DNA of 64,000 bases from sequence record MK250021.1; one strand, written 5' to 3'. The position numbers and the translations under genes are program-made. A model generated the notes under the pieces. The model did not search any database and was not told the origin of the DNA. It worked only from the letters and a program-made list of their open reading frames with translations. Below, one piece after another: positions 3,006-42,738 of this stretch. The number at the start of each line of letters is the position of its first letter. The first letter of the stretch is position 1.

Positions 3006-3291
3006 ATGGAAAGATTATATAAAGAATTAATTAAAGATATATCAATAAGTGTAAAGTAGGCAATAGAAGAATCAATAGGTACATTACAAACTGATAATGA
3101 TATAGATATAATATATATATATACGTAATAATATTAATAATTTAGATTTAAGTGAGTTTAATTATGATATATTAAATTATCTGATACCTGATAAAGAAAC
3201 ATTAATTAATACAGTATTATGTAAAATGTCGGTATCTGACGAAACAATTAATAATATAATGTTATAGATAAAAAATAAGTGTAAAAAATAA
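3006..3291 (+). pseudogene. frameshifted small gene with conserved leader peptide
   Basis: ATG 3006 encodes MERLYKELIKDISISVK(TAG)AIEES... and stops at TAA after the (AT)6A tract at 3111-3123; the +1 frame continues IRNNINNLDLSEFNY... to TAA 3291 with no start near its 5' end. Confidence 0.5.
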
Positions 3292-3346
3292 CTTTTTAAC
3301 ATTTTTAGATATATAATAAAAAGATTTTTTCGATTAAATAAGATTT

Positions 3347-5251
3347 ATGGTAAGCAAGAAGAGTTTAGAAAGTAAGTATCAAAGTATGTCGGAATTAGAT
3401 CATATCTTGAATAGATCAGGTATGTATATAGGTTCCGTAAAGAATGAGAATAAGCAAATGTTTTTATATTCATCAGATGATGCAAAGATGAAATTAGTTG
3501 ATGTTGAATATACACCAGCATTGTTAAAGATGTTGGATGAGATTATATCAAATTCATGTGATGAGTATAGAAGAATAGATAATATGGGATTGACAGAAAT
3601 GTCTGTTACCATTGATAAGCATGGACGAGTAATCGTAAGAGATAATGGTGGTATTCCTGTTGTTAAACATAAGGAAGCAGGAATTTATATTCCTGAATTT
3701 ATATTCTCACAACTAAGGACAAGTAGTAATTTTGATGATTCAGAAGATAGAGATGTAATAGGTACAAACGGTCTTGGTAGTAAAATTTGTAATATATTCT
3801 CTACGTTTTTTTCTATATATACAGCAGATAAGAAACATTCATATTATAGATCATGGAAGAATAACATGCGAGAAATGAATGATGATTTACAAGTTAAGAC
3901 CACGAAAGATCATTTTACAGAAAGTACATTTGACGTTGATTTTTCCAGATTTGAATGTGGTAATGAGTTCTCGGAAGATTTTATTAATATTATAGAAAAA
4001 CGTTGTATTGATGCAGCTGCCGCTAATATAGGTTTAACTGTTCATTTTAAATATACAAATGGTAATGATGTTGTTAGAGAATCTGAATGGCATTTTCGTG
4101 CATTTGATGAGTATATTGATTTATTTTCTGATTATGTAGATACAGAACAAATGTTGAAGTTTTCTGATTCTATCATGCAAGTTTGGGTATTTCCTGATAA
4201 TGGTATTAATGTTGGATTTGTGAATGGTGCTGAATGCTCAAGAGGAACACATATCAAAGCGGTTAGAAATGAAATTAATTCTGCTGTATCTGCATATCTT
4301 TTATCAAAAGAAAAAATTGATATTACGCCAAAGAATGTAGATGGAAAATATTCAATGTTCTGTACATTCCATGTTAATAATCCGTCTTATGATTCACAGA
4401 CAAAGGAATGTTTGACAACAGTAGTTGAAAGATTTTCAAATGATAATAAGTATACATTTAAGGTACCAGATTCATTTATTAAGTCTGTTTTGAAATCAGA
4501 GATTGTAGATATTGTAATAGATTGGTATAAACAAAAATGTGAAGTAGAGGATCAAAAAACATTAAGAAAACTTAATAGACAAGCTAAAGCGAAAATTCGT
4601 AATAATGATAAATTCATTGATGCAAATTCTAAAAGATCAGCTGATAGAGAGCTTTGGATATTCGAGGGTGATTCTGCACGCGCAGGATTTAGAGCAGCAA
4701 GAGACCCACAAACACAAGCAGCATATATGTTACGAGGAGTAATTCTTAATGTAATGGGACTTGCTCCAACAAAGATTATGGCAAATAAAGAGTTGTCTGA
4801 TTTATTTAATATCATCGGTTTACAATGGGGTGAACCTGTAGATGTGAAGAAATTGAATTTCAGTAAATTGGTTATAGCAACAGATGCTGATTTTGATGGT
4901 AGTAAAATCGCAGGTCTTCTTTTAACATTCTTTAATTTATGGCCAGAACTTTATGATGCAGGTTTAATTTGTAGATGTATTACACCTATTATTAAAGCTG
5001 TTAAAGGAAACGATGTTCAGAAATTTTATACGATGGATGAATTTAGGAAGAAAGAAAATTCATTGAAAGGATACAAGATAACATATTTAAAAGGTCTTGG
5101 CTCAAGTACGAATGAAGATTATAAGGATATGATGAGAAATTCTGTTCTTCATTTCTTTAAGAAAGATGAACTTTCTGATATGACTATTAAAACATGGTTT
5201 GGAAAGGGTATTGCAAAAGAGAGAAAATCATTACTTAAGAATGAAGTTTAA
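3347..5251 (+). CDS. type IIA DNA topoisomerase, ATPase+TOPRIM subunit (T4 gp39/gp60-like, GyrB-like)
   Basis: GHKL motifs (EIISNSCDE, DNGGIP, GTNGLGSK), TOPRIM EGDSA, IATDADFDG, YLKGLGS. Confidence 0.95.
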   Translation: MVSKKSLESKYQSMSELDHILNRSGMYIGSVKNENKQMFLYSSDDAKMKLVDVEYTPALLKMLDEIISNSCDEYRRIDNMGLTEMSVTIDKHGRVIVRDNGGIPVVKHKEAGIYIPEFIFSQLRTSSNFDDSEDRDVIGTNGLGSKICNIFSTFFSIYTADKKHSYYRSWKNNMREMNDDLQVKTTKDHFTESTFDVDFSRFECGNEFSEDFINIIEKRCIDAAAANIGLTVHFKYTNGNDVVRESEWHFRAFDEYIDLFSDYVDTEQMLKFSDSIMQVWVFPDNGINVGFVNGAECSRGTHIKAVRNEINSAVSAYLLSKEKIDITPKNVDGKYSMFCTFHVNNPSYDSQTKECLTTVVERFSNDNKYTFKVPDSFIKSVLKSEIVDIVIDWYKQKCEVEDQKTLRKLNRQAKAKIRNNDKFIDANSKRSADRELWIFEGDSARAGFRAARDPQTQAAYMLRGVILNVMGLAPTKIMANKELSDLFNIIGLQWGEPVDVKKLNFSKLVIATDADFDGSKIAGLLLTFFNLWPELYDAGLICRCITPIIKAVKGNDVQKFYTMDEFRKKENSLKGYKITYLKGLGSSTNEDYKDMMRNSVLHFFKKDELSDMTIKTWFGKGIAKERKSLLKNEV

Positions 5252-5257
5252 TTATAT

Positions 5258-5298
5258 AATTCCATATGTTAATAAATTTTAAACATATGGAATTTTTT
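5258..5298 (+). terminator. intrinsic terminator
   Basis: AATTCCATATGTT / AACATATGGAATT stem followed by T-tract just after the topoisomerase stop. Confidence 0.7.
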
Positions 5299-5314
5299 AT
5301 TATATAATAATGTG

Positions 5315-5325
5315 TGTATCTTTGT
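5315..5325 (+). promoter_or_regulatory. Bacteroidota-type -7 promoter element
   Basis: TGTATCTTTGT upstream of PRTase copy 1. Confidence 0.7.
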
Positions 5326-5357
5326 GATAATATATAAAATTAAATAAAAAATAAATT

Positions 5358-6302
5358 ATGAATAAAGAATTATTAAAAGAAAATATATCGGAATCCGTTA
5401 AAGATATATTAAAGAAATATAATATTAGTGATATTAATGAATCAAATATATTAATATCTATAAATAATTGTATAGATAATATATTTGAAGGAATAGATAT
5501 AGATCAAAGAAAACGACTTGTATCATTTAATCCAAATCATCAGAATTATGTAGATACAAATGATCCATGGAATCCAAAACCTATATATAATGAAGTAGAA
5601 GGTTATAAGGTAATTTCAATATTTAAACGTAAAGAAACTGAAGATAAACATGATGGAAATCCTGTTATATATGCACTTAAAGATATAAGAGGATGGAAAT
5701 TTAAAAATCCATCATATGACATATTTGCATTATTACGTAGATTTGTTTCAGTAACAAAAGAGCTTAAAGAAAATTTTGATGTTATTATTACCACACCATC
5801 TTCTAATAAATTAAATACCGAAGTTTTATATAGAATAAGGAGACTTATAAATCATGAAACATCATATGAGGATTTCTTTTATAAATATGGTGCTAATGAT
5901 GTGTATGAAAATTTTCTTGATACTAATTATCTAGAAACACATTATAATGAAGATGAGCAGGAACATATACATGATTTATTATATGAAGCAATTTCTAATA
6001 TGATGAAACCTAAAGAAAACAAAGGTAATGATGGTATTTTTTCTTATAAATTTATACCCCAACAAGAATTACGAAAATGTATTATAAAATCATTAGGCAT
6101 TAATAAATTGTATAAAGATGAAATAACATATGGTAAGTATTTAAATGGTAAGAAAATACTGGTTATAGATGATACAGTCACATCGGGTAAAACCATATCT
6201 GATTCGGCGACAGCAATAAAAGATATGTATGATCCAGAATCTATAACATTTTTAACTTTATTTTCACCATTAGAACGAAATAAAAATAATTTAGAAAAAT
6301 GA
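5358..6302 (+). CDS. phosphoribosyltransferase-fold protein, copy 1 (314 aa)
   Basis: Type I PRTase PRPP-binding loop [13 protein letters not shown]; TPSS motif; paralog of 9367..10293. Confidence 0.8.
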
Positions 6303-7177
6303 ATATTATAGATGGGAAATTAATATCAACTCAAATTAAAGAAGAAATAAAAAATGAAGTTGATAATATTATAAATAAAGGAGGACGACAACCACATCTT
6401 GTAGCAATAATAGTAGGTCATGATGGAGGATCTGAAACATATGTACGAAATAAAGTTAAAGCTTGTGAAGCATGTGGATTTAAAAGTACAGTATACCAAT
6501 ATGAAGATAATATATCAGAAGAAGATTTAATTAATAAAATTATATTATTAAATAATAATCCGAATGTAGATGGTTTTATAGTTCAACTTCCATTACCTAA
6601 ACATATTAATGAACAAAAAATAATTGAAACAATTGATTATAAAAAGGATGTAGATGGTTTTCATCCAATTAATGTAGGACGATTAAATATAGGTTTACCT
6701 TGTTATATATCAGCTACGCCAAAAGGTATTTTTGAATTATTGAAAAGATATAATATTGAAACAAAAGGAAAACATTGTGTTATTATTGGACGTAGTAATA
6801 TTGTTGGTAAACCTATGTCTACATTGATGGTTCAAAAACAATATGGAGATTCAACAGTAACAGTATGCCATTCACATACTGAGAATTTAAAGGAAATAAC
6901 AAAACATGCAGATATATTAATTGTAGCTCTTGGTAAACCTGAATTTGTAACTGCAGATATGATAAAAGAAAATGCAGTTGTTATTGATGTTGGTACAACA
7001 CGAATTCCTGATAATACAAAAAAGTCAGGATTTAGATTATGTGGAGATGTAAAATATAATGAAGTTGCACCGTTATGTAGTTATATTACACCTGTACCTG
7101 GAGGAGTCGGACCTATGACGATTGCAATGCTTATGCAAAATACATTATCTGCGTATAAACATGAAATATATGATTAA
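6299..7177 (+). CDS. folD: bifunctional methylenetetrahydrofolate dehydrogenase/cyclohydrolase
   Basis: [51 protein letters not shown] motifs. Confidence 0.95.
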
Positions 7178-7196
7178 TTATTAAAATGAATAAATT

Positions 7197-7751
7197 ATGA
7201 CTATTATATTTTCAAATATGTTAGATCCAGATTGTCAAGTTATTAGAAATGCATGGCAAGGATTAGATAATATACATCTTATAGAAATAACACCAGATAT
7301 AGATGGTTATGAAGATATAGTTAATAATGCAATTATATCAGAAGATGATACTATATTATTTTTGGGACATGGTACAGCAAAAGGTTTATTATTTCCAAAT
7401 TTTAATAAAGAAAAATATTTATTACATGAATTTAATATAAATTTAGTTCATGCAAAAAATATAATATGTTGTTGGTGTTATGCATCAGATTTTGTAATTA
7501 ATAATAACTTACATAATACATTCTCAACATCTATGTTTATTTCTAATACAAATGAAGCAAATGATAATGGTATAGATAATTATACACAAAAACAAATTAA
7601 TATAAATGGTGAGAGATTTTATAGTAATATAAATCAATTATTGAAATATAATATACCATTGAATGAATGGGTAATGCAATTGGGTGCAAAGATGGATATT
7701 GAAAATGAAATAGATACATTTAATAGACAAGGATTATTTTATAAAGAATAA
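7197..7751 (+). CDS. hypothetical protein, possible caspase/gingipain-like (clan CD) fold
   Basis: Hydrophobic strand + GHG (ILFLGHG) and downstream strand + Cys (IICCWCYAS). Confidence 0.4.
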   Translation: MTIIFSNMLDPDCQVIRNAWQGLDNIHLIEITPDIDGYEDIVNNAIISEDDTILFLGHGTAKGLLFPNFNKEKYLLHEFNINLVHAKNIICCWCYASDFVINNNLHNTFSTSMFISNTNEANDNGIDNYTQKQININGERFYSNINQLLKYNIPLNEWVMQLGAKMDIENEIDTFNRQGLFYKE

Positions 7752-7786
7752 AAAAGGAAGATACAATAATAAGTATCTTCCTTTTT
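7751..7786. terminator. bidirectional intrinsic terminator
   Basis: AAAAAGGAAGATAC / GTATCTTCCTTTTT between convergent genes. Confidence 0.75.
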
Positions 7787-7791
7787 ATATA

Positions 7792-9252
7792 TTAAATTAA
7801 TTTACCTTTTATAATATCTTCTTTGATAATATTAAACAATTTTTCTCCAAAAGCATTTAAATCTTTAACAACACATGTATAAACTGCATCATCTGAATCT
7901 CTATAAGCATATGCATTATCAGATATATATTTGTTCCTATATGTATCAGATGGTGAAAGTTTTGTTAAATTAATTAATACATCAGATTTATTCATATCTG
8001 AACTTCCAGACTGTAAATAACATTGTATAATAAATTTACGCACATCGGTATTATAATATAATGATTTAATAGCTCCACTCCAATCATTATAATTAACATT
8101 AATTAATTTATCAGGATTATTCTTTAATATTTGCTTAATATTTTCTTTTACCCATTCAAAATAATTAGAAGGATTACTATCCATATTATATTTAATTAAA
8201 GTTTCTTCACTATGTTCTGCATTTCCTGATTCATCTCCCGTTTGTTTATATTTAATATAAGGTTTAACGATATATAAAAATACTCCTTTTGAAAATAATT
8301 TTATTATATTAGGCTTATTTTCAAAATATCTACATGCAGTGAAATTATATTTAAATAAATTATTTCCATCAAATTTTTCATTGAAATCACGTCGTCTTGC
8401 ATCTGGTGCGAATGACGCAGCTTCATTATGAATAAAACAATCATATGAATTTTCCTTTATATCAATAGTTAAATATTGATAAAATGTATCCCAACCTCTT
8501 TTTCTAGTGCCTACATTTTCATAAATTTCAAATAATACATCATTTGTACTTTTAAATAATTTATTAAAATTAACAATATCATTTTGAAGTAAACTGATAA
8601 GTTTATCAAAGTTCTATCCAGATTTTCTAACTAAACTATTTACATATTTTTCAATATCTACTTCACATTTATCAAATGCTTTGTTATAACTACCAACAAA
8701 ACTGGTTTTTAAATCATTGCTATCATATAATGATACAGGTATATGTTGTATAAGTGAATCTAGTATTGTAATATATTTTTTATTAATAGGTGAACGTTTA
8801 GCACGTGGTTTTGAAACATTAGGAGTTGAAATTACAGGTTCAGTTACACGTGTTTTTCTAGAAACCGGTTGTTTTTGTACAGGTTCAGATGAAATACCCA
8901 TATTAATATTATATAGCTATTGAATTTCTTCTATAGTTCCACCCAAATCTAATATTCTGTGTCCAAATAATTTGAATACTTTAATTTTATCTATATCTCT
9001 TTCACTTTTTGGACATGGTTTTTTCATAATAATTAAAGCTGCAACATATCTGTTAAGTAAATCATCCTTAGTAAGTTTCTTCATAGGTTTTACCAACTCA
9101 CATTCAGTAGCTTTATTTCTTGAACAAACTGACGCAACACTTAACCATAATTTCCTATCTAATGTTCTATGGTCAATACGTTTTGCCATTTCATTTAATG
9201 ATTTCTTTAAACTATATGATATACCATTCATTAATTCTTTATATAATGACAT
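7792..9252 (-). CDS. hypothetical protein (486 aa, 2 in-frame TAG), shares N-terminal domain with 39800..41425
   Basis: Track ORFs 8917..9252, 8614..8901 and 7792..8184 are one frame joined only by TAG at 8917 and 8614; homology to 39800 continues across the TAG (EEIQ*LYN vs EEIQALYN). Confidence 0.85.
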
Positions 9253-9329
9253 TGTGTTTAATATTAAAACTTTTTATATTTATTTGTTTTAATAGTAAAG
9301 ACTTTATGTTTCCTAATTAATAAAATAAA

Positions 9330-9366: not shown

Positions 9367-10293
9367 ATGACTAAAGATGAATTGAAAAATATTGTTTCCT
9401 CTGTTATGAGTGAAACTTTAAAAAAATATAATATTAATGAAATTGAAACAAATAATATGTTATTTTCATTAAATGAATATATGGATAATCATATGTTTGA
9501 AGGAATAGATGTAGATGATGAAAATCATATTGTTTCATTTAATCCTAATCATCAAGAATATGTAGATACAAATGATCATTGGAATCCAAAACCTATATAT
9601 AATGAAATAAATGGTTATAAGGTAATATCTATATTCAAACGAAAGGATACAGAAAATAATTTAGACGGTAATCCTTTAATTTATGCATTAAAAGGTCATA
9701 AATGGAAGTTTAAGAATCCATCATATGATATATTCGCGTTATTACGTAGATTCGTTGCAGTAACAAAAGAACTTAAAGAAACATATGATGTAATTATAAC
9801 AACACCATCATCTAATAAATTAAATACTGAAGTATTATATAAAGTTAGAAGGTTGATAAAACATGAAACTTCATATGAAGATTTCTTTATGAAGAATGAT
9901 GCTATTTATGTATATGAAGAATTATTGGATAATAATTGGATTGAAAAACATTATAATGAAAAAGATGCAAAACGAATAGATACTGAAATATATAGGGCTA
10001 TTTGTCGCATACAAAAATCAAAAGATAACGGAGGTAATGATGGTGTTTTTTCATATAAGTTTATACGAAATAAAGATGTAAGAAATGCAATAATTCAATC
10101 CATGAGTATAAATGATATGTATAAAGATGAAATAACATATGGTAAGTATTTAAATGGAAAGAAAATATTGGTTATAGATGATACAGTTACATCTGGTAAG
10201 ACTATATCTGATTCTGCTGAAGCAATTATTGAAACATATGCACCAGAATCTATAACATTCCTAACTTTATTTTCACCTTTAATGTCTGAATAA
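9367..10293 (+). CDS. phosphoribosyltransferase-fold protein, copy 2 (308 aa)
   Basis: [13 protein letters not shown]; long near-identical blocks shared with 5358..6302. Confidence 0.8.
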   Translation: MTKDELKNIVSSVMSETLKKYNINEIETNNMLFSLNEYMDNHMFEGIDVDDENHIVSFNPNHQEYVDTNDHWNPKPIYNEINGYKVISIFKRKDTENNLDGNPLIYALKGHKWKFKNPSYDIFALLRRFVAVTKELKETYDVIITTPSSNKLNTEVLYKVRRLIKHETSYEDFFMKNDAIYVYEELLDNNWIEKHYNEKDAKRIDTEIYRAICRIQKSKDNGGNDGVFSYKFIRNKDVRNAIIQSMSINDMYKDEITYGKYLNGKKILVIDDTVTSGKTISDSAEAIIETYAPESITFLTLFSPLMSE

Positions 10294-10295
10294 TT

Positions 10296-11168
10296 ATGAA
10301 GAAATTATTTAATTTAAATAATAATATTTGTGACCAAATATTAAATGAAGCACAAATACATTTTACAAAGAATTGTTCAAATAAATGTCCATTTTGTATA
10401 GATGCATTTAATAACGGTGTTGGAAATTCAAAACCTGATATTGATAAGATATTTTTATCAGTTTTAAATATAAAAGATAAAATTGATGAAATTGCAGTGT
10501 CTGGGGGCGAACCTATGCTTTATATAGAAGACTTACTTAAGTTGGTAAAGAATATAAAAAGATTTGCTAAATTACCGGTTACTGTAATTACATCAATGCC
10601 TATACCATGCTGGACAGAAAAGGAAACATTCTTTGAAATTATAAAAGTGATAGATCATTTAATCATATCACCACAACATTACGATCAAGAAGTTGGTGAC
10701 AAAATAAGACATAGTGTTTCACTTTATAATAGAGATAGATTATTTGAAGAAATTCCATATAAGAATAAAGTTTCATTAACACTAAATGCTATTAAAGGAT
10801 ATTTAGATTCAAAAGAAGATTTTATTGATAATATTAAACATTTTGAAAAATTAGGGTATTCTCATTTTAAGTTAGCAGAAATGTTTGAACATGATGAACT
10901 TTATGTTTCATTAGAGGATATATTTGGATTTAAATTACCTAAACCATTCGCTTATGGTTGTAGTAATAAACATTTTGATTTATCACCATATTTAGGATAT
11001 AAATCAAATTCAGATTTTACAATAAAAAGATGTTGTTTTTATAAAACACATAAACAACATGCATCAATAAATGATTTATTGAAAATACTAATAAGACCAT
11101 TATTTTCAAAGAAATATTTCTTTTGTATAATATATGAAAATGGTGAAATTGTTCAGAGATGGTCATAA
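10296..11168 (+). CDS. radical SAM enzyme (290 aa)
   Basis: CxxxCxxC (CSNKCPFC) and SGGEP motifs. Confidence 0.85.
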   Translation: MKKLFNLNNNICDQILNEAQIHFTKNCSNKCPFCIDAFNNGVGNSKPDIDKIFLSVLNIKDKIDEIAVSGGEPMLYIEDLLKLVKNIKRFAKLPVTVITSMPIPCWTEKETFFEIIKVIDHLIISPQHYDQEVGDKIRHSVSLYNRDRLFEEIPYKNKVSLTLNAIKGYLDSKEDFIDNIKHFEKLGYSHFKLAEMFEHDELYVSLEDIFGFKLPKPFAYGCSNKHFDLSPYLGYKSNSDFTIKRCCFYKTHKQHASINDLLKILIRPLFSKKYFFCIIYENGEIVQRWS

Positions 11169-11186
11169 AATTAAATAAAAATAAAA

Positions 11187-11687
11187 ATGGATTATAAAAA
11201 TATTATAGATACAATAACAAAATATGTAGGTGATTATATAGCATCCCATGCAAATAGAAATGAATTACTTACAAGTTATGATTCTGTTAATAAGATAGAT
11301 GAAGCTATAAAGAATATAGATAATACTCTTAATTCTATAGATGATTCTGAATTATCAGAAAAACTTAAAGATTATAAACAAAAGAAGGAGGAAGAAAAAC
11401 GAACTATAATGAATGACCTCATGTATAAAATATTACCAAAACAACCGGTAATTGATATGGATGATTATGTTAGAATACAAGATAATAAAGGAGAACATTT
11501 AATTCTTAAAAATGTTGATGATTCTTTTATAGATCCTTTATTTCCTTCAAAAATAACGGCAGTTAAACAAAAGGAAAAGAAGAAAACTGTTACAAAAACA
11601 GCAAGAGAATATTATGATGATTATTCATCAGGAGGATGTGGTAATACATATGGTTCTCCATATCATCATTGGAGTGGTGGATGTTAA
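11187..11687 (+). CDS. hypothetical protein with Gly/Cys-rich C-terminal tail (166 aa)
   Basis: Open frame; ends SSGGCGNTYGSPYHHWSGGC. Confidence 0.7.
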   Translation: MDYKNIIDTITKYVGDYIASHANRNELLTSYDSVNKIDEAIKNIDNTLNSIDDSELSEKLKDYKQKKEEEKRTIMNDLMYKILPKQPVIDMDDYVRIQDNKGEHLILKNVDDSFIDPLFPSKITAVKQKEKKKTVTKTAREYYDDYSSGGCGNTYGSPYHHWSGGC

Positions 11688-11719
11688 AAAATATAAAGTT
11701 TTAATATATAAAGATTATT

Positions 11720-12661
11720 ATGTCAAAAGAAGAAATAATTAATAGTTTTCCAGAACCATTATATGGTTATAATTTATCTAAAGATAAAGTTATAGAACTA
11801 ATAGAGTTATGTATGAATTCTAAATCAGCTAATATATTAAATAATATTTTAACTGATTTTATTAATAAAAATGTTTCACATATTGATTTTATAATTAGGG
11901 AAGATGATATAGATACCGGTATTTTAAGTAAAAAAGATATTGATAGTAATTTAAAATTCGATCAATTTATGGCATGGTATTATGGTTTTTCTGATTATAA
12001 TAAAATCATGTATGATAAGTATTCAGATTATTTAAAAGATAAACATGTTATTGCACCTAAATATTGTGTAAAAGATTGGTTTAATGATGTAATAAAGTAT
12101 TATAAAGAGCAACATCAACCAATTCATACGTTATATGATGCATGTAAAATTGCTGCTGATATGCTTTATAAAGATGTATTCAATGAAGAATATCAAAGTA
12201 TGAGGACGTCATATCATAATGATCAAACATTGATGTGTCAAGCATTAGGATCATATCTTAAACAGAAATATATGTATAAAGTAAGTGTTTCTCAAAAGAA
12301 ATTGTTCTATAAGGAAACAATGAGATGCCTTATGTTTCCACGATATTTTGGTTATAATAATGATTATCTTTCATATATATTTAAAAAAGGAAAGTATCCT
12401 CGTAAAACAAAGAAATTTCTTAATAATCCAAATAGTCATAATATTTCTGGCAAAAATAGATTTAATAAAATTAGAAGAAATAAAACACATATGAATATTA
12501 GGAAATTATATTCTGATTATGGTCCTCAAATGGATTTATATCATATATTTAAAAATTCAGGTATTCCTGAAGAAATAACAAATAAGATTTGTCCTTGGAA
12601 AGAATATGTATCTATAAACATCGATGATATGTCAGTTAATGTAAACGGAACATTTTATTAA
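11720..12661 (+). CDS. hypothetical protein (313 aa)
   Basis: Long open frame within the operon; no recognised motif. Confidence 0.75.
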   Translation: MSKEEIINSFPEPLYGYNLSKDKVIELIELCMNSKSANILNNILTDFINKNVSHIDFIIREDDIDTGILSKKDIDSNLKFDQFMAWYYGFSDYNKIMYDKYSDYLKDKHVIAPKYCVKDWFNDVIKYYKEQHQPIHTLYDACKIAADMLYKDVFNEEYQSMRTSYHNDQTLMCQALGSYLKQKYMYKVSVSQKKLFYKETMRCLMFPRYFGYNNDYLSYIFKKGKYPRKTKKFLNNPNSHNISGKNRFNKIRRNKTHMNIRKLYSDYGPQMDLYHIFKNSGIPEEITNKICPWKEYVSINIDDMSVNVNGTFY

Positions 12662-12670: not shown

Positions 12671-13843
12671 ATGGAAGAAAAACAATAGATAAATGATGAA
12701 TATATAATTTCTTTATTTTTCACATCAACTACAATGCCACATAGAATAAGATCATCATCCAATAAAATAATTGAAAATAATAATGATATAAAAAAATATT
12801 TGTTACATAGATTTAACGATTCTAATAATTGTAGTTATAAAGAAATACTTCATAGAATAAAATATAATATAGAAGAAAAACCTAAATGCCCAATTTGTGG
12901 AAAATATGTAAAATATTATGGTCTTTCAAATATGTTATATGGGAAAACATGTTCACGTAAATGTCAATACGAATATATGAAAACCGATGAATTTCAAAAT
13001 AAAATAGATCATTCATATATGAAAGATCCTAATATTATAAAAAGAATATAGGATAAACGAAAATTAAAAATGAATGAAATTAGAGAAAAGACAAAATAGA
13101 CTCTTTTTGTCAGATATGGTGATTCACATTATAATAATAGAAATAAATGTAAACAAACATTATTAGAAAAATATGGTGTTGATAATATAATGTAGTTAGA
13201 TTTTGTAAAAGATAAAATAAAGAAAACAAATTTGATTCGTTATGGTGTTGAATGGTCAGCACAAAATAAGCAAATAAATCAAAAAACAATAGATACACAA
13301 ATAAAAAAATATGGTGGTGTATTTAATCCAGAAAAAGTAAGAAAAACAAATATTGAAAAATATGGAGTGGAAAAACCATTTATGTCTGAAGAAATTCAAA
13401 ATAAAGTTGAAAATAAACGAGATATTATTCAAAAGAAAACTAATATAACAAAACGTTTAAGAGGTACATTTAATACATCAAAACCTGAAAATGAATCTAA
13501 AACTTTATTAGAAAATAAATTTGGCATTAATAATGTATTAACTCAATATAAAACCGAATTATATCCATTTTATTGTGACTTTTATGTCAAATCATTAAAT
13601 TTATATATAGAATGTAATTATCATTGGACACATGGTGGTCATGTATTTAATGAAAATGATTTAAATGATATAGAAAAACTTAATAAATGGAAAAATAAAA
13701 ATACAAAATTTTATAATACAGCAATAGATGTTTGGACTGTAAGAGATCCATTAAAAATAAAAACCGCATATGATAATAATTTAAATTATAAAACTTTTTA
13801 TTCTTTAGATGAATTAAAACAATATTTAGAAAATACATTATAA
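12671..13843 (+). CDS. putative free-standing homing endonuclease (Zn finger + KYGV repeats + Vsr/DUF559-like nuclease; 390 aa, 4 TAG)
   Basis: ATG 12671, TAG at codon 6 and three more join track ORFs 12734..13051 and 13232..13843; CPICGK...CSRKC, repeated (R/K)YG(V/D), C-terminal CDFYVKSLNLYIECNYHWTH. Confidence 0.75.
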
Positions 13844-13868: not shown

Positions 13869-15293
13869 ATGAAAGTAACAACAAAGAAAGTTAAAGGTTT
13901 AGACGCACATATTATTGAAGATAGTAATAAGAAAGTAGTAAGAACTATAACAGATTTTTTAAATACAGATTATAAGGATTATACAAAATATGTAATTGCT
14001 ACAAGAGCATTACCGAGTCTTCTTGATGGATTTAAAGTAGGAGCTAGAAAGATTATGCATGCTGCTTTCCATGGAGGTATGAAAAATGGGTCTGAGATCA
14101 AGAATTTGAATTTGGTTGGCGATGTTTATAATTTAACATTATATCAACATGGTGACGCGAGTTTGGTAAATACAATGTTTACAATGTCTGCAGAGTTCCG
14201 TGATAACCTGCATCCTATTACCATAACTGGTCAACATGGTTCGTTACGTGATGAAAAAGCTGTTTCAGCTCCACGTTATCTTTATTGTAAGTTATCTCCA
14301 TACGCAAAACTTTATAAAGTAGATGAAGATCTTCTTGAATATGTTTTTGATGAAGGTGCTTATCTTGAACCAGTAAATTATTGGCCTATTATTCCTACTG
14401 TTATTACTGCACGTGCAGAAGGTATGGCACCAGGTTATAAATTCAGTTCATTTTCTTATAACCCTATTGATATTATCGACGCATGTACAGAAGTATTGAA
14501 TACTGGAGATATTAAAGAAACTATTATTAGACCTTATGTTAGAGGTATTGAAGAAGATAGATTTACATTTGATAAAGATGCTGGTAAATGGTTGAATTCA
14601 GGTGTATATAAGGTAGATATTAAGAATGATATATTTCAGGTAACAGACCTTCCATATGATATGGGATTTGATAAGTTTGAGAAGAAACTTAATGATATGG
14701 TAGAAAAAGGGTATCTTAAGGATTGGAAGAATTATTCTCAGGATGATAAGTTGAATTATTGGTTGATATTTCCTAAGAAACAACTTGAACGTGAGATGAA
14801 ACCAGAACGTAAAGATAAACTTTTTAAGAAAATTGGATTATATACATATGTACCAGATGATTTACTTTATGTTCTTGATGAACATAAGAAAGTAAAGCAT
14901 TTTATCAATAAGGAAGAACTTATTAAATATTTTGTTAATATTCGTCTTAACAAATATAATGATAGGAAAGATAGATTAGTTTCTGTCATGGAAAAACGTT
15001 ATGAGGAAAACAATAATATTTGTAAATTTATAGAATTAGTTAACAGTGGTGAATTAGTTATCTCTAATAGAAAGAGAAAAGATGTAAAGGATGATTTGAA
15101 GAAATATAATTTACCTGAAACTGTATTACAAATTCAGATTTCTAAGTTAACTGATGAAGAGAAGAAAGAATTGATTAAGAAGAATAAGGAGATTGAAAAA
15201 GAACTTAAGTATATTAAGAAAACAACTATTAAGGACATGTATCTTAATGATTTAAGTGAATTGAGAAAATCTCTTGAAAATGATTTTAAATAA
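13869..15293 (+). CDS. type IIA DNA topoisomerase, DNA-cleavage subunit (T4 gp52-like, GyrA-like)
   Basis: RALPSLLDGFKVGARK, YQHGDASL, catalytic APRY. Confidence 0.95.
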   Translation: MKVTTKKVKGLDAHIIEDSNKKVVRTITDFLNTDYKDYTKYVIATRALPSLLDGFKVGARKIMHAAFHGGMKNGSEIKNLNLVGDVYNLTLYQHGDASLVNTMFTMSAEFRDNLHPITITGQHGSLRDEKAVSAPRYLYCKLSPYAKLYKVDEDLLEYVFDEGAYLEPVNYWPIIPTVITARAEGMAPGYKFSSFSYNPIDIIDACTEVLNTGDIKETIIRPYVRGIEEDRFTFDKDAGKWLNSGVYKVDIKNDIFQVTDLPYDMGFDKFEKKLNDMVEKGYLKDWKNYSQDDKLNYWLIFPKKQLEREMKPERKDKLFKKIGLYTYVPDDLLYVLDEHKKVKHFINKEELIKYFVNIRLNKYNDRKDRLVSVMEKRYEENNNICKFIELVNSGELVISNRKRKDVKDDLKKYNLPETVLQIQISKLTDEEKKELIKKNKEIEKELKYIKKTTIKDMYLNDLSELRKSLENDFK

Positions 15294-16057
15294 TGATAGA
15301 TAATCTTTTTGATGATGATATTTTAATTGGTGATGATTCATCTTCTGTATTTAATGATACAGGAGTTGAATCATTAACTAATTTAATAGGTAATAATATT
15401 ACGGAACTTAAGAAAAATTCATATCTTAATATGAGAGGAACTAATTATGATGTATGGAGAGCATATCTTAATGAGACAAAAGGAAGATACCATGATGGAT
15501 ATTGGAATAGTTTTTCATATAATGTAAATGATCCTTATAATGTTACATTAAAAATTAAATCATTAAATGGATTTAAATTTCATAATAGACAAACAAATTA
15601 TAGATTAGGTATTTTAGACATTAATTTATTTAGATGCATTCCATATATACAGAAGATAGAATTAGAACCAATATATGATGATAGAACAATATTTAATGAT
15701 ATTATCTTTATGAATATGTTAAATAACAATAAACATAAAGATAATAATATGATAGATAAATCATTTGTTGATAATTTACAATGGTTAGAAGAAATACGGA
15801 ATGAATATCAAATAAAGAATAATATATCACAGTATATAGTATTTCAAGGATGTGTATTTGATGTTGATGCAATTCAATATTTAAATGATAATATTCCAGA
15901 TAATTTTGATATTATCATAACTTCAGACTGTGATATATTTATGAATGATGAATATATAAATGTTTTTAGATTACCATTGATGTTTAATACTAATTTTGAT
16001 TGGAATACATGTAATAAAATATCATTATATAGAGAACCTATATTTAAAATTCATTAA
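15293..16057 (+). CDS. hypothetical protein with LFDDD-type leader (254 aa)
   Basis: Open frame overlapping the topoisomerase stop by 1 nt; starts MIDNLFDDDILIGDD. Confidence 0.7.
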   Translation: MIDNLFDDDILIGDDSSSVFNDTGVESLTNLIGNNITELKKNSYLNMRGTNYDVWRAYLNETKGRYHDGYWNSFSYNVNDPYNVTLKIKSLNGFKFHNRQTNYRLGILDINLFRCIPYIQKIELEPIYDDRTIFNDIIFMNMLNNNKHKDNNMIDKSFVDNLQWLEEIRNEYQIKNNISQYIVFQGCVFDVDAIQYLNDNIPDNFDIIITSDCDIFMNDEYINVFRLPLMFNTNFDWNTCNKISLYREPIFKIH

Positions 16058-17867: not shown

Positions 17868-17909
17868 ATATTAATATTCTTATATTATGTATAATATTTA
17901 TTAAATAAA

Positions 17910-17947
17910 AAAGAACTGTAAATCTTTTTGATAATTTACAGTTCTTT
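17910..17947 (-). terminator. intrinsic terminator
   Basis: AAAGAACTGTAAAT / ATTTACAGTTCTTT immediately after the stop of the 1328-aa gene. Confidence 0.7.
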
Positions 17948-17965
17948 AATTTATGTATTATTATA

Positions 17966-21952: not shown

Positions 21953-21970
21953 GATTAAATAATATTATTT

Positions 21971-23041: not shown

Positions 23042-23117
23042 AAAACGTTAAAAAATACTTTTATTATTTATTTTTGATATATTTTCATTAATGTGTTTTC
23101 TTATTTCAAATAAATGT

Positions 23118-30583: not shown

Positions 30584-30681
30584 GGTTATGTTACATAATG
30601 GTTAATGAGGTATCTAATTGATATTTTAATATCAATGGAAGAAAGGTATTGCGGTGACGGGTTCGAGTCCCTCCATAACCA
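30584..30681 (+). tRNA. non-canonical tRNA-like gene with a hairpin inserted in the anticodon loop
   Basis: Perfect 7-bp acceptor GGTTATG/CATAACC plus discriminator A; D-loop AATGGTTA; T-loop TTCGAGT with a bulged stem; the anticodon loop holds about 30 nt including an ATTGATA/TATCAAT hairpin; anticodon not assignable. Confidence 0.6.
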
Positions 30682-30901
30682 CTCCTTATAATAATGAAAA
30701 GGATGCAATTATCTAACATAGATATTATTATAGTATAAGAAATTATGATAATTCTTAAAATGATAATCAAGAGATTGAAGTAACTAATTAATGTATAGTT
30801 ACTAAGGCGAAAGTATAACTGCAATTATATTAGTAGTTGGCGTTTAAAAGATTGAAGAAAATTATTTGCAGATAATTTTTGGATTGATATTAAATGTAAA
30901 A

Positions 30902-30995
30902 ATTATAATAGTGTAGCGGGAATGCACGTTCGATGATAAATCGGAAAGGGATTAACGGTATGACGTTATTAAGGGTTCGACTCCCTCTTATAAAC
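30902..30995 (+). tRNA. degenerate tRNA-like gene with long variable arm
   Basis: A/T-only acceptor (6 of 7 pairs), D-arm GTGT/GCAC, anticodon arm TTCGA-TGATAAA-TCGGA lacking U33, variable hairpin AACG/CGTT, T-arm GGG-TTCGACT-CCC. Confidence 0.55.
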
Positions 30996-35255: not shown

Positions 35256-35328
35256 TATTAATAGGATGATATAAACTAATATATCATCCTATTATTTTAA
35301 TAAATATTTAAATGTTAATTTTTATTAA

Positions 35329-36393
35329 ATGAATAAATTAATTAAGAAATTAATGGAGGGATTATTTGATGATTTTGATGATGAAATTTTATCAAATTCA
35401 GATAATTCAAATAATGTATCTCAATAGATAATTGAAACGGAAGATAAACCTAAAATTAAAGAATGGTTGTTAGATAATATTATTTGTAAATATGGAACAC
35501 CATTTAAATGTGATGAAGGTAATGATATTGAATATACATTTGAATCAGATGGATTACATTGTAATTTAAAATTTAATGTACAAGATGCAAAATTTATGAA
35601 TTCTATTCCAGATTATGTTAAAATTAATAAAATAACTTGTAATACTGTAGAATTTGCAGACTTTATTAATTTACCTAAAGAAATAGATGGGACATTAAAT
35701 ATAAAAGGATGTAAGGAAAAAGATTTAAATGTACAATTACCAGAGAAATTAGGTGTATTATCGCTTATTAATTGTAAAATACGTTCATTGAAAGGATTAA
35801 GTAATACATGTAAATCAATAGAGCATCTTTGTATAGAAAATTGTAATATGTTTACTTCATTTAATGGGATTCCAGATAATGTTGGATTTATATAGTTAAT
35901 TAAATGTAAGAAAATAGTAGATTTAGAAGGAATTCCAGATACAGTAGAGAGAATTGTATTAGTTTCATTACCTTCATTTGAAAGTTTAAAAGGATGTCCA
36001 AATAAATTAAGTAATGGATTGTATATATAGGAGTGTCCATATTTAACCACATTAGCTTATTGTCCATCATTAATAATGGACCAATGTGAAATACATGATT
36101 GTATGTTATATCAGTTAGATATGAAAAATACAAGAATTTGTGGTACATTTAAATTAAGTAATAATAATTTATCAGATTTAGAAAATGGACCAAAACAGAT
36201 AGACGGATCATATATAGTTTCGGAACCGTATTTAGCAAAATTTAAAGCTAATGAAACTATTATGACAAATGCGTATAATAATGCGGAATTTATATATCAA
36301 GTTAGGAAAAAATATTTTAAAGGAAATAAAAATGACATGCCATAGATGAACAATGGTGTAAAAATTGTATGTCAATATTTAGAAGATCTCTAA
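35329..36393 (+). CDS. leucine-rich-repeat-like protein with LME-GLFDD leader (354 aa, 4 TAG)
   Basis: Repeats SLKGLSN / SFNGIPD / DLEGIPD / SLKGCPN continue across TAG; joins track ORFs 35467..35895 and 36076..36345. Confidence 0.8.
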
Positions 36394-37262: not shown

Positions 37263-37405
37263 AATTTATTAAAATTAAATGTTAATGTTAAATCTAAATT
37301 TTTTAATTACTTAATGTATATGATAAGTATAAGAAAAAGTCTATTATAAATAGAATAAAATATAAAATATTAAAGTAAATAATGATTAATAACAAATAGA
37401 ATTTA

Positions 37406-38539
37406 ATGGATGATATATTAGATGCAATATCAAAAGGATTAAAAGAAAGTTTAAATATAGAAGAGCAAATCCATCCATATAATGGTGTTTTAACGGATAT
37501 AAGAGATTACGAATCTGTATTTCATTCTCCAAATTTTGAATTATATAAATTAAATGAAAAATATCATGAAGTATGTATATCTCAATAGATATTAAATAAT
37601 ATTATAAAAATAATTAAAGATAATAAAAATAATTTAGGAAAAGACATATATACAAATTATTGCTTTAAAATATATAAAGTTAATAATCATAAAACATATA
37701 AAATATATAAATCAATTAATATTAATAAAGATCACCCTATATATGTAAATTTATATTCTAATAAAAGTAATGTATATGGTAAAACAGAAAATAGACTTAT
37801 ATCTAATGATATAAATTTAGATAATGATCATATAAGAATATATATAAATGTTTATTATATTAATATGGAAAAATTTATATATTCTGTATTAAAACATGAA
37901 TTAACACATGTTGTTGAAATGTATTCTGCTAAAAAGTTTAATAATATTAATAATTTAAAAAATACTATAGGAATTGATAAGGATAATGATATAATGTTAG
38001 ATATAAATCCATTAGCAAAAAATATGTTAAATAGGATGGTTTACTTATTTTCTAATACTGAACATAATGCACACATAAATGGTTTAGCTGAATTTATCAA
38101 TAAATTATCACCAACAGAAATAAAAAAATATACAAAATATATACAACATGAAGATGATGATGAAAATATTAAAGTAATTAATAATATAAATAATCCTATA
38201 TATAATTTTATGAGAAATTATGATGATTTAGATATATTAACAAATTATCAGGAATTTGAAGATTATATGTTTGATTTAAAAAGTTATTTAGAAAACAATG
38301 ATTTATTACCAATTTTTTATTTAGGTTATTTATTATAGAAACATCATTTAATATATAACAAAACTTAGATAAATTGGGATTTTATTAAAAATTATATGGA
38401 TAAAAAATATAAAAATTATAGTAAATATCATAATATTGCTGTATAGATAGTAAGTTTCTATGATTATAAAATAAAACAATATAGAGAAGACATATATAAA
38501 ATAATATATAAGAAATTTAAAGAAAAGAAAATTATTTAA
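37406..38539 (+). CDS. putative Zn metalloprotease (HExxH; 377 aa, 4 TAG)
   Basis: VLKHELTHVVE followed by FSNTEHNAH (gluzincin-like third ligand); frame continuous through TAG. Confidence 0.7.
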
Positions 38540-38541
38540 TC

Positions 38542-39066: not shown

Positions 39067-39116
39067 AAACAAATTAACCATTATTTTATATAACATATAA
39101 ACATTTAATATAGTTT

Positions 39117-39464: not shown

Positions 39465-39532
39465 GACTTTATTTTGGAATTTCATTATAATATGTAAAAT
39501 AATAAACTAATAAATTTTACATAATAATTAAT

Positions 39533-39700
39533 ATGAAACAGATTAAAACTAATCAATTCAATTCCGATAAAGTACAGGTAAAGATGCCTTGGACTGTTTA
39601 TGATAACTATAATATAAAGAAAGATCCAAAGGTAACAATAGGTGTTCCTATTAATGAAAATTTGAAACTAATAGATACTGATAAAACAATTTGGTATTAA
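39533..39700 (+). CDS. small hypothetical protein (55 aa)
   Basis: ATG to TAA followed by a terminator hairpin; below the track cut-off. Confidence 0.5.
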   Translation: MKQIKTNQFNSDKVQVKMPWTVYDNYNIKKDPKVTIGVPINENLKLIDTDKTIWY

Positions 39701-39799
39701 TAGATATAAAAAAGTCTGAATTATATATGATTATAATTCAGACTTTTTATTTTATTTATATATGTAAAATAAATAATATAATAATTTATTATATTAAAA

Positions 39800-41425
39800 A
39801 TGAATCAAAAATTATATAGAAGTTTAATTGAAAGTATAGGTATTGCTATTAAGAAATCAATAAATGAAATGGCAAGACTTTCTGTATAGAGAACCATAGA
39901 TAAGAAACTTTGGTTAAGCGTAGCATCTACATGTTCTAGAAATAAATCAACAGAAGCAGAGAATATTAAACCAGGTAAAGGAGATAAAGATAATCTTCTC
40001 AATAGATATGTTGCAGCTCTTATTATAATGAGAAAACCATGTCCATAGTCTGAAGATGATATTGATGATATTAAAACATTTAAATTGGTAGGACATAAGT
40101 ATTTAGAATTAGGTGGTACTATTGAAGAAATTCAAGCTTTATATAATAAAAATACAGGAAAACCTTCTACTAATAATACATCTACAAAAAAGCAAGTTGA
40201 AGCAAAAGATAATACGGAAAACAATAAAGGTTTTGATAATGCAGTAGAATAGAAAACATCTGGAGGCGGATTATTCGACGATGATGATATATTTGGAGAC
40301 GATGAAGTTAATAGAGCATTAACATCTGACTTACAAAAAAAGATTTTAGATCTACCAAAAGAAACATCATTAGAAAATGTATTAATGTAGAGTATAGGTA
40401 TTACAAAACCACGTGGATGGAAATATATCAAACATACAAATGAAGAATATGATAAATTTGTATTTAATATGAGTGGTACAAGCATAACACCAGAATACAC
40501 ATGGAATTATCCTAAATATTTGAAAGATTTCATAAACCTTATAAACAGTAAAGGATGGAAATTATATAAGGTTGAAGCACCGTCTTTATTCGGTTATTAT
40601 AGATTTGAAAATATGACACCTGCATAGGTAAAACAATAGATACAATACGCATGTGAATCAAGATATAAACTTGGTAGAGACTTAACAGAAACTATAGATA
40701 ACCGCTTTAAAGAATATGAAGATTTTATAAATAAACGTAGAAAGGACATATAGACATTCGATAATGATTTTGTAAAACAAATGTTTGAATCTGATGAGAA
40801 TGTATATAGAGTGTTTTTATCGCCTGATGAAGGACTTATGCTGACATGTACAAGACCTATACCAGTAAATGTATCATATGGTAATTCAAATATTTCAAAA
40901 AATTATTATACTAATTATACAGAATGGATATGGACTGTAACATTTACAGGAAATGTAAATGATTATGATGAAAAAGATAAAACAGATATAAAAAAATTAA
41001 AGGAAGATAATAAGAAATATAATAAGCGCAAAAAAATATTTAGAACATTATTAGATAAACGATGTGGCTTGTCAGGATTTAAGTGGACAGTGTTTAATGA
41101 TGGTAATGGTTATCCTATAATGGTTAAGATATGTAGTAAAGGATCATGTAAGATTACATATGATAACTTTACAAAAAAATATTATAATCCTTATACAAGT
41201 AAATCTAGTTATTATTATATACCTACAGATGATAAGACATTTCCTAATTCATTTAAGGAGGCTGTTTAGAATAAAGAACATTGGGGTGTATCATTGGTGA
41301 AATTAGTATGTTGTAATAATGACGGGAAATATGGTCATTCCCTATATGGTGGAAGTGATGATGAAGCATATATGATTATAATGCCTACATATTATGGTAA
41401 AGCCATGATTGATTCTCTATTATAA
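39800..41425 (+). CDS. chimeric hypothetical protein (541 aa, 8 TAG)
   Basis: N-terminal ~110 aa homologous to 7792..9252; middle LFDDDDIFGDD...KPRGWKY...SKGW similar to 16743..17867; includes track ORF 40781..41269. Confidence 0.85.
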
Positions 41426-41474
41426 TGAATACAAATAAATATATATGAATTAAAATATAATTTTTAATAATAAA

Positions 41475-41891
41475 ATGAAAGTTAGTGAAAAGAAGAAATT
41501 ATATGAGTCTATCATGATGAATGTATCAAAGATAGTTAAGAAAAAATTAAATGAATATGGCGATGGTATCGAGCAGGATGTTGATCCAGATGATGATATT
41601 ACTGTATATGTTCCTTTGATTGGTTGTGAATGCACTGTTATTCCTTGTTATGATGAGGAAACAGGTGGAACATTCTACGAGGTTCATGATGATAATGATG
41701 AATATGTATGTGAGATTCATGATGATGTGGATACATCAGATGAAGACGCATTGGTAGATGCTATTGAGGACAATTACCAATGGGAATCAAAATCAGGTGA
41801 TTATGAAAATGTTGATCCATTAGGTCCTGATGATTCTGATGTAGATGATGAGTTCGATACTTATGAAGAAGACGAAGATTATGATGTTTAA
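41475..41891 (+). CDS. small acidic protein with LYESIM...LNE leader (138 aa)
   Basis: Basic leader followed by a D/E-rich body. Confidence 0.75.
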   Translation: MKVSEKKKLYESIMMNVSKIVKKKLNEYGDGIEQDVDPDDDITVYVPLIGCECTVIPCYDEETGGTFYEVHDDNDEYVCEIHDDVDTSDEDALVDAIEDNYQWESKSGDYENVDPLGPDDSDVDDEFDTYEEDEDYDV

Positions 41892-41894
41892 TAA

Positions 41895-42248
41895 ATGAAA
41901 AGAATTATTAATATAAGACCATTATCAGAAAATACAATAAGGAAATCTTTTGGTACTTCATTAGAAGATAAACTGAGAGAATTAAGAGATGAAGTAAAGG
42001 ATAGTAGATTACTTGAAGATACTTTAGTATTTCAGATAGGTAGGGAAGTATATACAGATAATGGTACAAGATATAAATTATTGGGAGGTCATCTATCATA
42101 CCAGGAAATGGGATTAACATAGATGGACCAACAGTTATATAGTAATATTGTTTCAGGTAAAACTGATGTTGATACAGTGCTATATAACTGGAAGAATAAA
42201 AAGGTTAAAAAATTGAACTTTTCTTCAAGAAAAACATAGAAAAAGTAA
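41895..42248 (+). CDS. hypothetical protein (117 aa, 2 TAG)
   Basis: Track ORF 41895..42122 ends in TAG; the frame continues to TAA 42248. Confidence 0.65.
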
Positions 42249-42251
42249 AAT

Positions 42252-42294
42252 AAAATGGTGAATATTTAATTTTATGTTAAATATTCACCATTTT
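42252..42294. terminator. bidirectional intrinsic terminator
   Basis: AAAATGGTGAATATTTAA / TTAAATATTCACCATTTT between convergent genes. Confidence 0.75.
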
Positions 42295-42296
42295 TA

Positions 42297-42738
42297 TTAA
42301 TATGTAGATAATTCTTGTGTAAATGTACTTAATGCATCATCTATAGATGAAAACTCTCCAAATGATACTTCTGTATCAGGATCAGAAAATACTTCAAATT
42401 CGAAATCTATTTTATCAACAGGGCCAACGGCTAATGTATATGTTCCATTATTATTCTATTGAATAGTTAAATGACTATTTTCTCCTCCACAAAAATCATC
42501 GAATTTCTATTGTAAATTATAATTATTTGCAAATATTCTCAATAATGATTCTGGTTCTCTATGTGTACCTTTTGAACCTCTCATAATTCTAACTTCAGAT
42601 GAATTAAAATATGATAAAATTATTTTCTTTAAATTATTTAATAGGTATATTAGAGTTTTCATTAAGCGTTCTTTTTACAGTTTTTGAAACAGATTTCATT
42701 ATAGATTCATAAAGTGATTTCTTTTGATTTTTATTCAT
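42297..42738 (-). pseudogene. leader-bearing gene with +1 frame offset (or a 34-aa leader ORF overlapping a 121-aa ORF)
   Basis: ATG 42738 gives MNKNQKKSLYESIMKSVSKTVKRTLNENSNIPIK then TAA; the +1 frame (own ATG at 42662) runs to TAA 42297 through 2 TAG. Confidence 0.5.

Follow-up and report, generated by a model that had tools for sequence, protein, structure and literature searches.

Two families of short N-terminal leaders in Lak megaphages: candidate capsid-targeting propeptides of a T4-type head

In the first 64,000 nucleotides of the Prevotella phage Lak-B2 genome (bases 1-64000 of MK250021.1, 549,839 bp, baboon faeces; hereafter the window), proteins begin with one or the other of two short conserved leader peptides, here termed class 1 and class 2. 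Lak megaphages, though frequent in the guts of humans and animals, are uncultivated, and some 80-90% of their genes have no known function. Our findings support a model where both leader classes are capsid-targeting propeptides of a T4-type head-assembly system, in a variant distinct in sequence and greatly expanded, and we regard this reading as probable. The leaders are N-terminal, are under selection at the peptide level, end at (L/I)NE, and co-occur with S77-type and gp23-type head genes and with a common upstream motif. They are read as address tags for the capsid because two short conserved leaders end at a T4-type prohead-protease motif on unrelated late genes; by analogy with T4, they would bind the prohead and be cleaved, and the attached proteins would be retained in the head and injected.

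The window has a G+C content of ~26%, and every in-frame stop in its previously named open reading frames (ORFs) is TAG. A reading of TAG as Gln is therefore needed, and that with translation table 11 was dropped; under TAG=Gln, the code already reported for Lak phages (PMC6784885), fragments merge into long ORFs. By megablast, 8 kb of the window were 100% identical to Lak-B2 and showed near-identity to other Lak-B genomes and ~85% identity to Lak-A and Lak-C where alignable. The census of leaders covered the whole Lak-B2 record, with bases 54103-54123 masked as N.

A preliminary description, made from the letters of the window, had placed class-1 leaders at 3006 (+), 9252 (-), 39800 (+), 41475 (+), and 42738 (-), and all five are present. 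The first, MERLYKELIKDISISVKQAIEE (3006-3071, +; 38.3 bits), in which Q18 is encoded by TAG, opens a truncated ORF of 40 aa (3006-3128) that ends at TAA TAA right behind an (AT)n run; longer homologues of 52-64 aa occur in metagenomes (P0006, P0009, and P0011). The second, MSLYKELMNGISYSLKKSLNE (9190-9252, -; 34.8 bits), belongs to a 486-aa ORF (7792-9252) in whose family alignment N-E-M-A is invariant, and the third, MNQKLYRSLIESIGIAIKKSINE (39800-39868, +; 36.1 bits), to a 541-aa ORF with eight TAG codons (39800-41425). The fourth, MKVSEKKKLYESIMMNVSKIVKKKLNE (41475-41555, +; 41.3 bits), precedes a very acidic body (pI 4.1, net charge -42) in a protein of 138 aa (41475-41891) whose orthologue in Lak-A1 and Lak-C1 retains the leader, and the highest scoring, MNKNQKKSLYESIMKSVSKTVKRTLNE (42658-42738, -; 53.7 bits), lies in an ORF of 34 aa (42634-42738). 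A profile of these five, refined on the genome's own matches and scanned over all stop-to-stop frames of a six-frame translation of Lak-B2, as the same description had proposed, recovered 14 full-length copies at 34.8-53.7 bits against a best reversed-sequence score of 11.8; 13 of them start with the first Met that follows the upstream stop. The weaker candidates that had been named fared unequally. One, at 37406, corresponds to a borderline and diverged class-1-like N-terminus, MINNKQNLMDDILDAISKGLKESLNIEE (37382-37465, +), on a 385-aa ORF (37382-38539) with ATAAATA 29 nt upstream, and scores 10.3 bits (E = 0.016 against 483 N-termini); the N-termini of both PRTases, at 2.0 and -1.1 bits, found no support as leaders and were rejected.

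The class-1 consensus, M-x(0-6)-K-K-x-L-Y-E-S-I-M-K-x-V-S-K-x-V-K-K-x-(L/I)-N-E, spans 21-27 aa. The leader is amphipathic (hydrophobic moment 0.39-0.55 versus 0.22 for shuffles) and, in its long form, basic (+4 to +6). By inspection, a Sec, lipoprotein, or Tat signal peptide, which would show a hydrophobic h-region of ~10 residues or more ahead of a signal-peptidase site or lipobox, was rejected: polar or charged residues alternate with hydrophobic ones, and hydrophobic runs, a Cys lipobox, and a twin-Arg are all lacking. AlphaFold modelling of the 39800 protein (mean pLDDT 61; Foldseek gave no significant fold match) predicts the leader as a single helix over residues 3-26, followed by a low-confidence hinge at residues 24-29, just beyond I-N-E at the proposed cut, and then by a separate helical domain. 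The same boundary is sharp in sequence. Aligned on their L-Y anchor, 90 metagenomic leaders carry 2-4.5 bits per column between position -26 and the Glu and 0.2-0.8 from +1 onward, so that conservation stops right after the Glu; [LI]NE is found in 86 of the 90, and P3 is L or I in 87. This P3 preference, along with the length, also led us to discard a phiKZ-like head propeptide.

Could such a pattern be an accident of composition? MNK and MKK starts are common in an AT-rich genome with abundant Lys, Asn, and Ile, and the weak PRTase candidates were of this kind. Nonetheless, in the genome scans the profile hits outscore the best reversed sequence by a factor of 3-5, and a profile of the five window leaders retrieved at least 367 clusters (E <=1e-3) from 1.84 billion representative proteins, nearly all matching from residue 1 (130 of 150 among the metagenomic matches listed). 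A chance or compositional artefact is thus refuted for the strong members, and overall we give it practically no credence. Among 50,697 phage records, class-1 leaders occur only in the 15 Lak records, with 12 places in Lak-A1 and 13 in Lak-C1, where the leaders of Lak-C1 orthologues are 46-80% identical and the bodies 43-78%. The strict pattern LYESIMKx[VI]xK, searched at the DNA level in IMG/VR, occurs at 24 places, all of them ORF N-termini and 22 on contigs of 158-673 kb, and other TAG-recoded, AT-rich phage contigs with T4-like replication genes carry several leaders each. With both classes together amounting to ~26 genes per genome, the leaders are a hallmark of Lak-type megaphages, and so greatly expanded a leader system in these phages is undescribed in the searchable literature, no paper of which mentions the LYESIM motif or describes leaders in Lak phages.

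Class 2 was likewise found where it had been placed, at 15293 (+), 17867 (-), 23041 (-), and 35329 (+), and the corresponding genome scan yielded 13 copies at 13.9-38.4 bits (reverse control 9.3), all within the first 45 residues. Its consensus, M-N-K-x-I-K-K-L-x-E-S-L-F-D-D-(D/E)-x-D-D, leads into an acidic, Asn-rich linker, and L-x-E stands immediately before SLFDD in 10 of the 13. In the window the class comprises MNKLIKKLMEGLFDDFDDEILSNSD (35329-35403, +; 33.7 bits) on a leucine-rich repeat (LRR)-containing ORF of 354 aa (35329-36393), MNKNIKLLLESLFDDEFDDLYNDDA (22967-23041, -; 32.0 bits) on a 356-aa ORF with nine TAG codons (21971-23041), MKKNIYKLLKLYESSSDLFDDDILGDEENTG (17775-17867, -; 15.6 bits) on a 374-aa ORF (16743-17867), and the weakest member, MIDNLFDDDILIGDDSSS (15293-15346, +; 13.9 bits), on a 254-aa ORF (15293-16057) that abuts a topoisomerase gene and lacks LxE, upstream motif, and TAG. 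The acidic motif also recurs internally, as LFDDDDIFGDDE (40271-40306, +; aa 158-169 of the 39800 protein), in a linker predicted to be disordered (residues 122-176, pLDDT <50) ahead of the domain common to 16743-17867, and a gene at 278260 carries class 1 and directly behind it class 2 on one protein. T4 Alt, cut at ITE-6 (MELITE/LFDED, the slash marking the cut), has a similar arrangement: the pattern [LI].E.?LF[DE][DE] gives 11 matches in six-frame Lak-B2 against 0.26 expected, 10 of them N-terminal, and in six-frame T4 a single match, at the Alt cleavage site, against 0.14 expected. We also observed, on a 14-kb metagenome contig of another TAG-recoded phage (L078), six class-1 leaders in which LNE is followed by another conserved acidic module, DIQNFNPVDY...IID, a counterpart of SLFDD in Lak class 2.

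The machinery that would act on such leaders is encoded in the same genome. A Peptidase_S77 (gp21-family) prohead protease lies at 498386-500131 (-; PF03420, 55-56 bits against a cut-off of 27; phrog_207, 8e-30) and aligns to T4 gp21 (PDB 5JBL), with GELDHP opposite GELNAP of 5JBL (GELNHP in wild-type T4 gp21) and VSSR opposite VASR; its N-terminus reads LTLNE(21)/SLDS, which may be likened to the LIE-9 site of T4 gp21. Adjoining it are a class-2 DUF285 protein and an acidic, coiled-coil-like protein of 417 aa, a scaffold candidate whose N-terminus weakly resembles class 1. The major capsid protein belongs to the T4 gp23 family (54796-56799, -; Pfam Gp23, 112.9 bits; phrog_138) and found no match by phmmer among solved structures. 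It contains ...NTAKLNE(64)/DAF, in which K-L-N-E forms aa 61-64 and L-N-E bases 56608-56616, a putative maturation site whose T4 gp23 counterpart is ...SFLTE(65)/AEI; this N-terminus is 99% conserved in Lak-A1 and Lak-C1. Genome-wide, [LI]NE occurs in the first 40 residues 57 times against 21.9 expected (2.6-fold, p = 7e-9), and the controls [LI]ND, [LI]NK, [LI]NQ, and [LI]EE show no enrichment in the same residues.

Leader genes also share an upstream signal. ATAAATA, a motif identical to the core of the consensus for late promoters of T4 (TATAAATA), is found in the 70 nt ahead of 23 of 28 leader genes versus 123 of 554 other ORFs (Fisher p = 1e-10), usually 19-35 nt before the ATG. A late-promoter-like example is found at 41435-41441 (+), with further copies at 2980-2986, 35300-35306, 37346-37352, and 39769-39775 on the same strand and at 9277-9283, 17895-17901, 23065-23071, and 42771-42777 on the other; the motif also stands ahead of the protease gene and the capsid gene (56854-56860, -). 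Among non-leader genes, genome-wide, it marks the TAG-using class (73/97 versus 111/361, odds ratio 6.9, p = 3e-15), and Devoto et al. associated TAG use with structural genes (PMC6784885). Leader genes thus belong to a late, TAG-using, ATAAATA class of genes, as do those of capsid and protease. In the window the use of TAG as Gln is mosaic, with TAG-free gene blocks (e.g. 3347-7751, 9367-12661, and 43334-47576) alternating with TAG-rich genes (e.g. 16743-23041, 26614-27870, and 39800-41425).

That the leaders travel with ATAAATA at a fixed 19-35 nt, and that their first codons are A-rich, might suggest a unit at the level of the nucleic acid, a promoter with a 5' coding cassette serving late transcription or translation start, in which the peptide is incidental. 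The codons speak otherwise. Conserved Ser columns mix TCN and AGY, conserved Leu columns mix CTN and TTR, and 134 of 374 identical residues differ in codon; since serine codons switch between TCN and AGY under a conserved residue, selection acts on the peptide. Moreover, ungapped DNA identity is 43% upstream versus 72% in the leader, and the leader pattern is kept in orthologues differing at 20-54% of leader residues. We consider such a cassette very improbable as an explanation of the leaders.

What follows the leaders is diverse. Most bodies have no known family, and those of metagenomic carriers share nothing. Among the recognizable ones are a sigma-70-family factor (199451-200464; Sigma70_r2, E = 1.3e-11; phrog_351, E = 2e-42), of which a second, divergent and leader-bearing example (P0114) exists in another phage; a protein of 404 aa (203010-204224) whose C-terminal domain is Phage_lysozyme; DUF285/BspA-type LRR and LRR_4 proteins behind class 2 (the LRR_4 match of the 35329 ORF being below cut-off); and a conserved "RTIDKKLW" family with four paralogs. 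The mature parts of several small leader proteins are extremely acidic (pI 4.1, net charge to -42). The preliminary description had taken the bodies to be unrelated. This is so for the sigma-70, lysozyme, and DUF285/LRR folds, but not for all window bodies, because 7792-9252 and 39800-41425 are paralogous (66% identical over the first 120 aa, with two further copies elsewhere in the genome) and 16743-17867 shares a C-terminal domain with 39800-41425. A protease among the bodies, claimed there as well, was dropped, as the leader-bearing proteins matched no protease family. Shared domains of this sort, including one of ~110 aa in 7792, 39800, 108590, and 205651, and the many paralogs of Lak genomes raise the alternative of one or two paralog families that diverged fast except at the N-terminus, the leaders being no more than their best-conserved part and having no addressing function. 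We find this improbable: sigma-70 regions 1.2-4, Phage_lysozyme, DUF285/LRR, and WYL_2 are unrelated folds, most of the 58 longer metagenomic carriers have no common family, similarity stops at one residue with no gradual decay, and tandem leaders (P0010 and P0127) and class-1-plus-class-2 hybrids (P0128) in metagenomic clusters amount to modular shuffling.

Overall, we suggest the following sequence of events. Leader proteins would be made late, at the same time as the capsid protein, the gp21-family (S77) protease, and a scaffold-like protein. The basic amphipathic helix of class 1, or the short tag of class 2, would bind the assembling prohead core, such that the attached protein becomes enclosed; the protease would then cut behind the Glu of (L/I)-x-E, the same type of site at which ~64 residues would be removed from the capsid protein and the protease would trim itself. 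Mature cargo would be kept in the head and expelled with the DNA at the next infection, and the promoter-plus-leader unit would let new genes join as cargo. The general address system for head loading proposed in the preliminary description finds partial support in the S77 protease, the LNE of the gp23-type capsid protein, the sharp (L/I)NE boundary, and the common motif; it has to be narrowed in that the bodies are only partly unrelated, the PRTases fall out, and no protease body is present.

The main rival to capsid-targeting propeptides is a shared interaction or localisation helix that stays uncleaved and has its role outside the capsid, for instance in docking to a chaperone, a membrane, the host RNA polymerase, or a replication or assembly factory, or as a degradation or regulatory tag. 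The basic, amphipathic character of the class-1 helix would suit such a role, as would the presence of a sigma factor and a lysozyme, which work in the cytoplasm or periplasm. It would also accommodate the C-terminal, class-1-like helix KKKKALYESIMSKVAKTIKRKLQLI of a 450-aa protein outside the window (204250-205602, +), a helix conserved in Lak-A1, Lak-C1, and IMG/VR contigs (L061, L062, L104, and L112) and followed by no cleavage motif, as well as the conservation of class 2 past the putative cut. Yet a helix of this kind leaves unexplained why conservation ends at the invariant Glu of (L/I)-N-E, matching the specificity of S77 proteases, and why the same tripeptide recurs in the capsid protein (residue 64) and in the protease (residue 21). 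In addition, the leaders have no hydrophobic core, lipobox, or signal-peptidase site, and a degron common to ~25 phage proteins is not known to have a precedent. We therefore rate this alternative as unlikely, though it is the strongest of those considered.

Several observations nevertheless weigh against capsid-targeting propeptides. At 21-27 aa the leaders are longer than most T4 capsid-targeting sequences, and class 2 stays strongly conserved past the proposed cut (SLFDD...), a feature for which propeptides pure and simple do not account. One leader-like helix is C-terminal (that of 204250-205602); T4 Alt also has a C-terminal propeptide, and by analogy the helix may be a C-terminal version of the tag. 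The sigma factor and the lysozyme have obvious intracellular late roles, in late transcription and lysis, that need no packaging. The scaffold-like protein of the model is itself a candidate (503479-504732), named from its position and from weak coiled-coil-type matches. Lak phages are uncultivated, and our search found no virion proteome, and a search of sequencing runs placed the stretch in DNA contigs of one study only, with no RNA run. Finally, the resemblance to Alt was noticed after the fact and covers only ~8 residues, and homology of the Lak leaders to T4 tags was rejected, class-1 and class-2 profiles scoring no better on T4 than on reversed T4. Because the profiles find nothing in T4 and the Alt match is post hoc, we claim a like mechanism and not homology.

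Carriers of the leaders appear to turn over. In Lak-B2 a frameshift cuts the leader ORF 42634-42738 from its former body (42297-42662, -); in Lak-B9 and Lak-B5 (L072 and L073) leader and body are in one frame but a stop interrupts codon 5. As the gene (42297-42738) has been disabled differently in the two lineages, it is decaying in both, which suggests ongoing loss or turnover of cargo genes. At the 37382-38539 locus, beside a DUF7873 gene, Lak-A1 (L034) has a homologous body with another N-terminus, and Lak-C1 (L035) an unrelated 324-aa gene whose leader is clearly class-1-like, an arrangement that points to replacement of cargo genes at a fixed locus. A broader hypothesis, which we hold to be possible but less likely than not, is that in Lak-type megaphages (250-670 kb) a portable promoter-plus-leader cassette acts as a general address system for at least two dozen fast-turning-over proteins co-injected with the DNA, the phage's own sigma-70-family factor included. 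For a sigma factor expressed from such a promoter beside head proteins, packaging for the next infection would fit better than an early role in the same infection.

If true, delivery of a sigma factor by a phage, reprogramming the host RNA polymerase at entry, would be without known precedent. The T4 capsid-targeting principle would extend to the largest known phages, with a sigma factor and a lysozyme suggested to travel in the capsid, and the 27-residue tag could serve as a portable protein-delivery tag, loading foreign proteins into huge-phage capsids. By sequence alone, the address tag would single out candidates for injected, virion-internal proteins, ~26 genes in each genome and families by the hundred in metagenomes, possibly the phage's first-strike toolkit against Prevotella. 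The model predicts exact mature N-termini, which are testable by metaproteomics.

Further features of the window deserve mention. Two T4-like topoisomerase II subunit genes (3347-5251 and 13869-15293, both +) lie ~8.6 kb apart, and between them are found the PRTase-like paralogs (5358-6302 and 9367-10293, 69% identical), an opposite-strand leader gene, and a homing-endonuclease-like ORF (12671-13843). The latter is one of four related homing/HNH-endonuclease-like ORFs, the other three of which (49321-51264, 51394-53049, and 53052-54749) cluster beside the major capsid gene. A TonB-dependent-receptor-like ORF (23972-26026, +), with Plug and beta-barrel domains, a signal-peptide-like N-terminus, and no TAG codons, resembles a host outer-membrane gene and is unusual in a phage. 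An inverted partial duplication pairs an ORF of 158 aa (43334-43810, +) with the C-terminal third of the adjoining 448-aa ORF (43826-45172, -), at 53% identity. ARAGORN called two over-long tRNAs (+), Ile-GAT (30584-30682, 99 nt) and Tyr-ATA (30902-30995, 94 nt); in an Rfam scan of the whole window no family reached threshold, tRNA included, and the two calls may be intron-bearing, degenerate, or false.

Among known systems, T4 offers the closest parallel. Its internal proteins and Alt carry N-terminal capsid-targeting sequences of 6-20 residues; these bind to the core of the prohead, gp21 cleaves them off at (L/I)xE, and as few as ten residues (MKTYQEFIAE) are enough for foreign proteins to be packaged (PMC9026906; PMC5694885; PMC8442874). 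The premise from which the preliminary description had argued, cleavage of an N-terminal targeting sequence by gp21 at (I/L)xE, agrees with these accounts (PMC9026906; PMC5694885). T4 gp23 loses 65 residues, and gp21 has a site at LIE-9 (PMC9026906). Lak phages share with T4 short N-terminal tags ending in (L/I)-x-E on unrelated proteins, a gp21-family S77 protease, a gp23-family capsid protein with a propeptide of ~64-65 residues (the cleavage site in Lak being putative), and leader genes that are late and bear the ATAAATA motif; the LxE/SLFDD of class 2 mirrors the ITE-6/LFDED of Alt. They differ in that class 1 is a basic amphipathic helix of 21-27 aa with N fixed at P2, that carriers number ~26 per Lak genome versus ~6 in T4, and that a sigma factor and many very acidic proteins are found among the cargo, the internal proteins of T4 being basic. 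In phiKZ and SPN3US, which are also giant phages, a gp21-related prohead protease processes many internal head proteins, the propeptides are thought to target proteins to the prohead, and in SPN3US the diverged paralogs gp53 and gp54 keep identical N-termini over 15 residues (PMC5694885). There, however, the motif is (S/A/G)-x-E and most propeptides exceed 100 residues (PMC5694885), versus (L/I)-N-E and 21-27 aa in Lak, and the carriers are mostly paralog families, unlike the short Lak tag on unrelated folds. The ~30-residue N-terminal signal of P1 DarB suffices to bring a reporter into the capsid, and its cargo is injected against host defence; yet DarB is a single protein of another phage lineage, with no multigene tag family and no S77-type cleavage motif (PMC9024508). 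Encapsulin cargo-loading peptides, although usually C-terminal, unrelated in sequence, not removed by a protease, and associated with neither DNA nor injection, likewise act as short portable peptides that send diverse enzymes into an HK97-fold shell.

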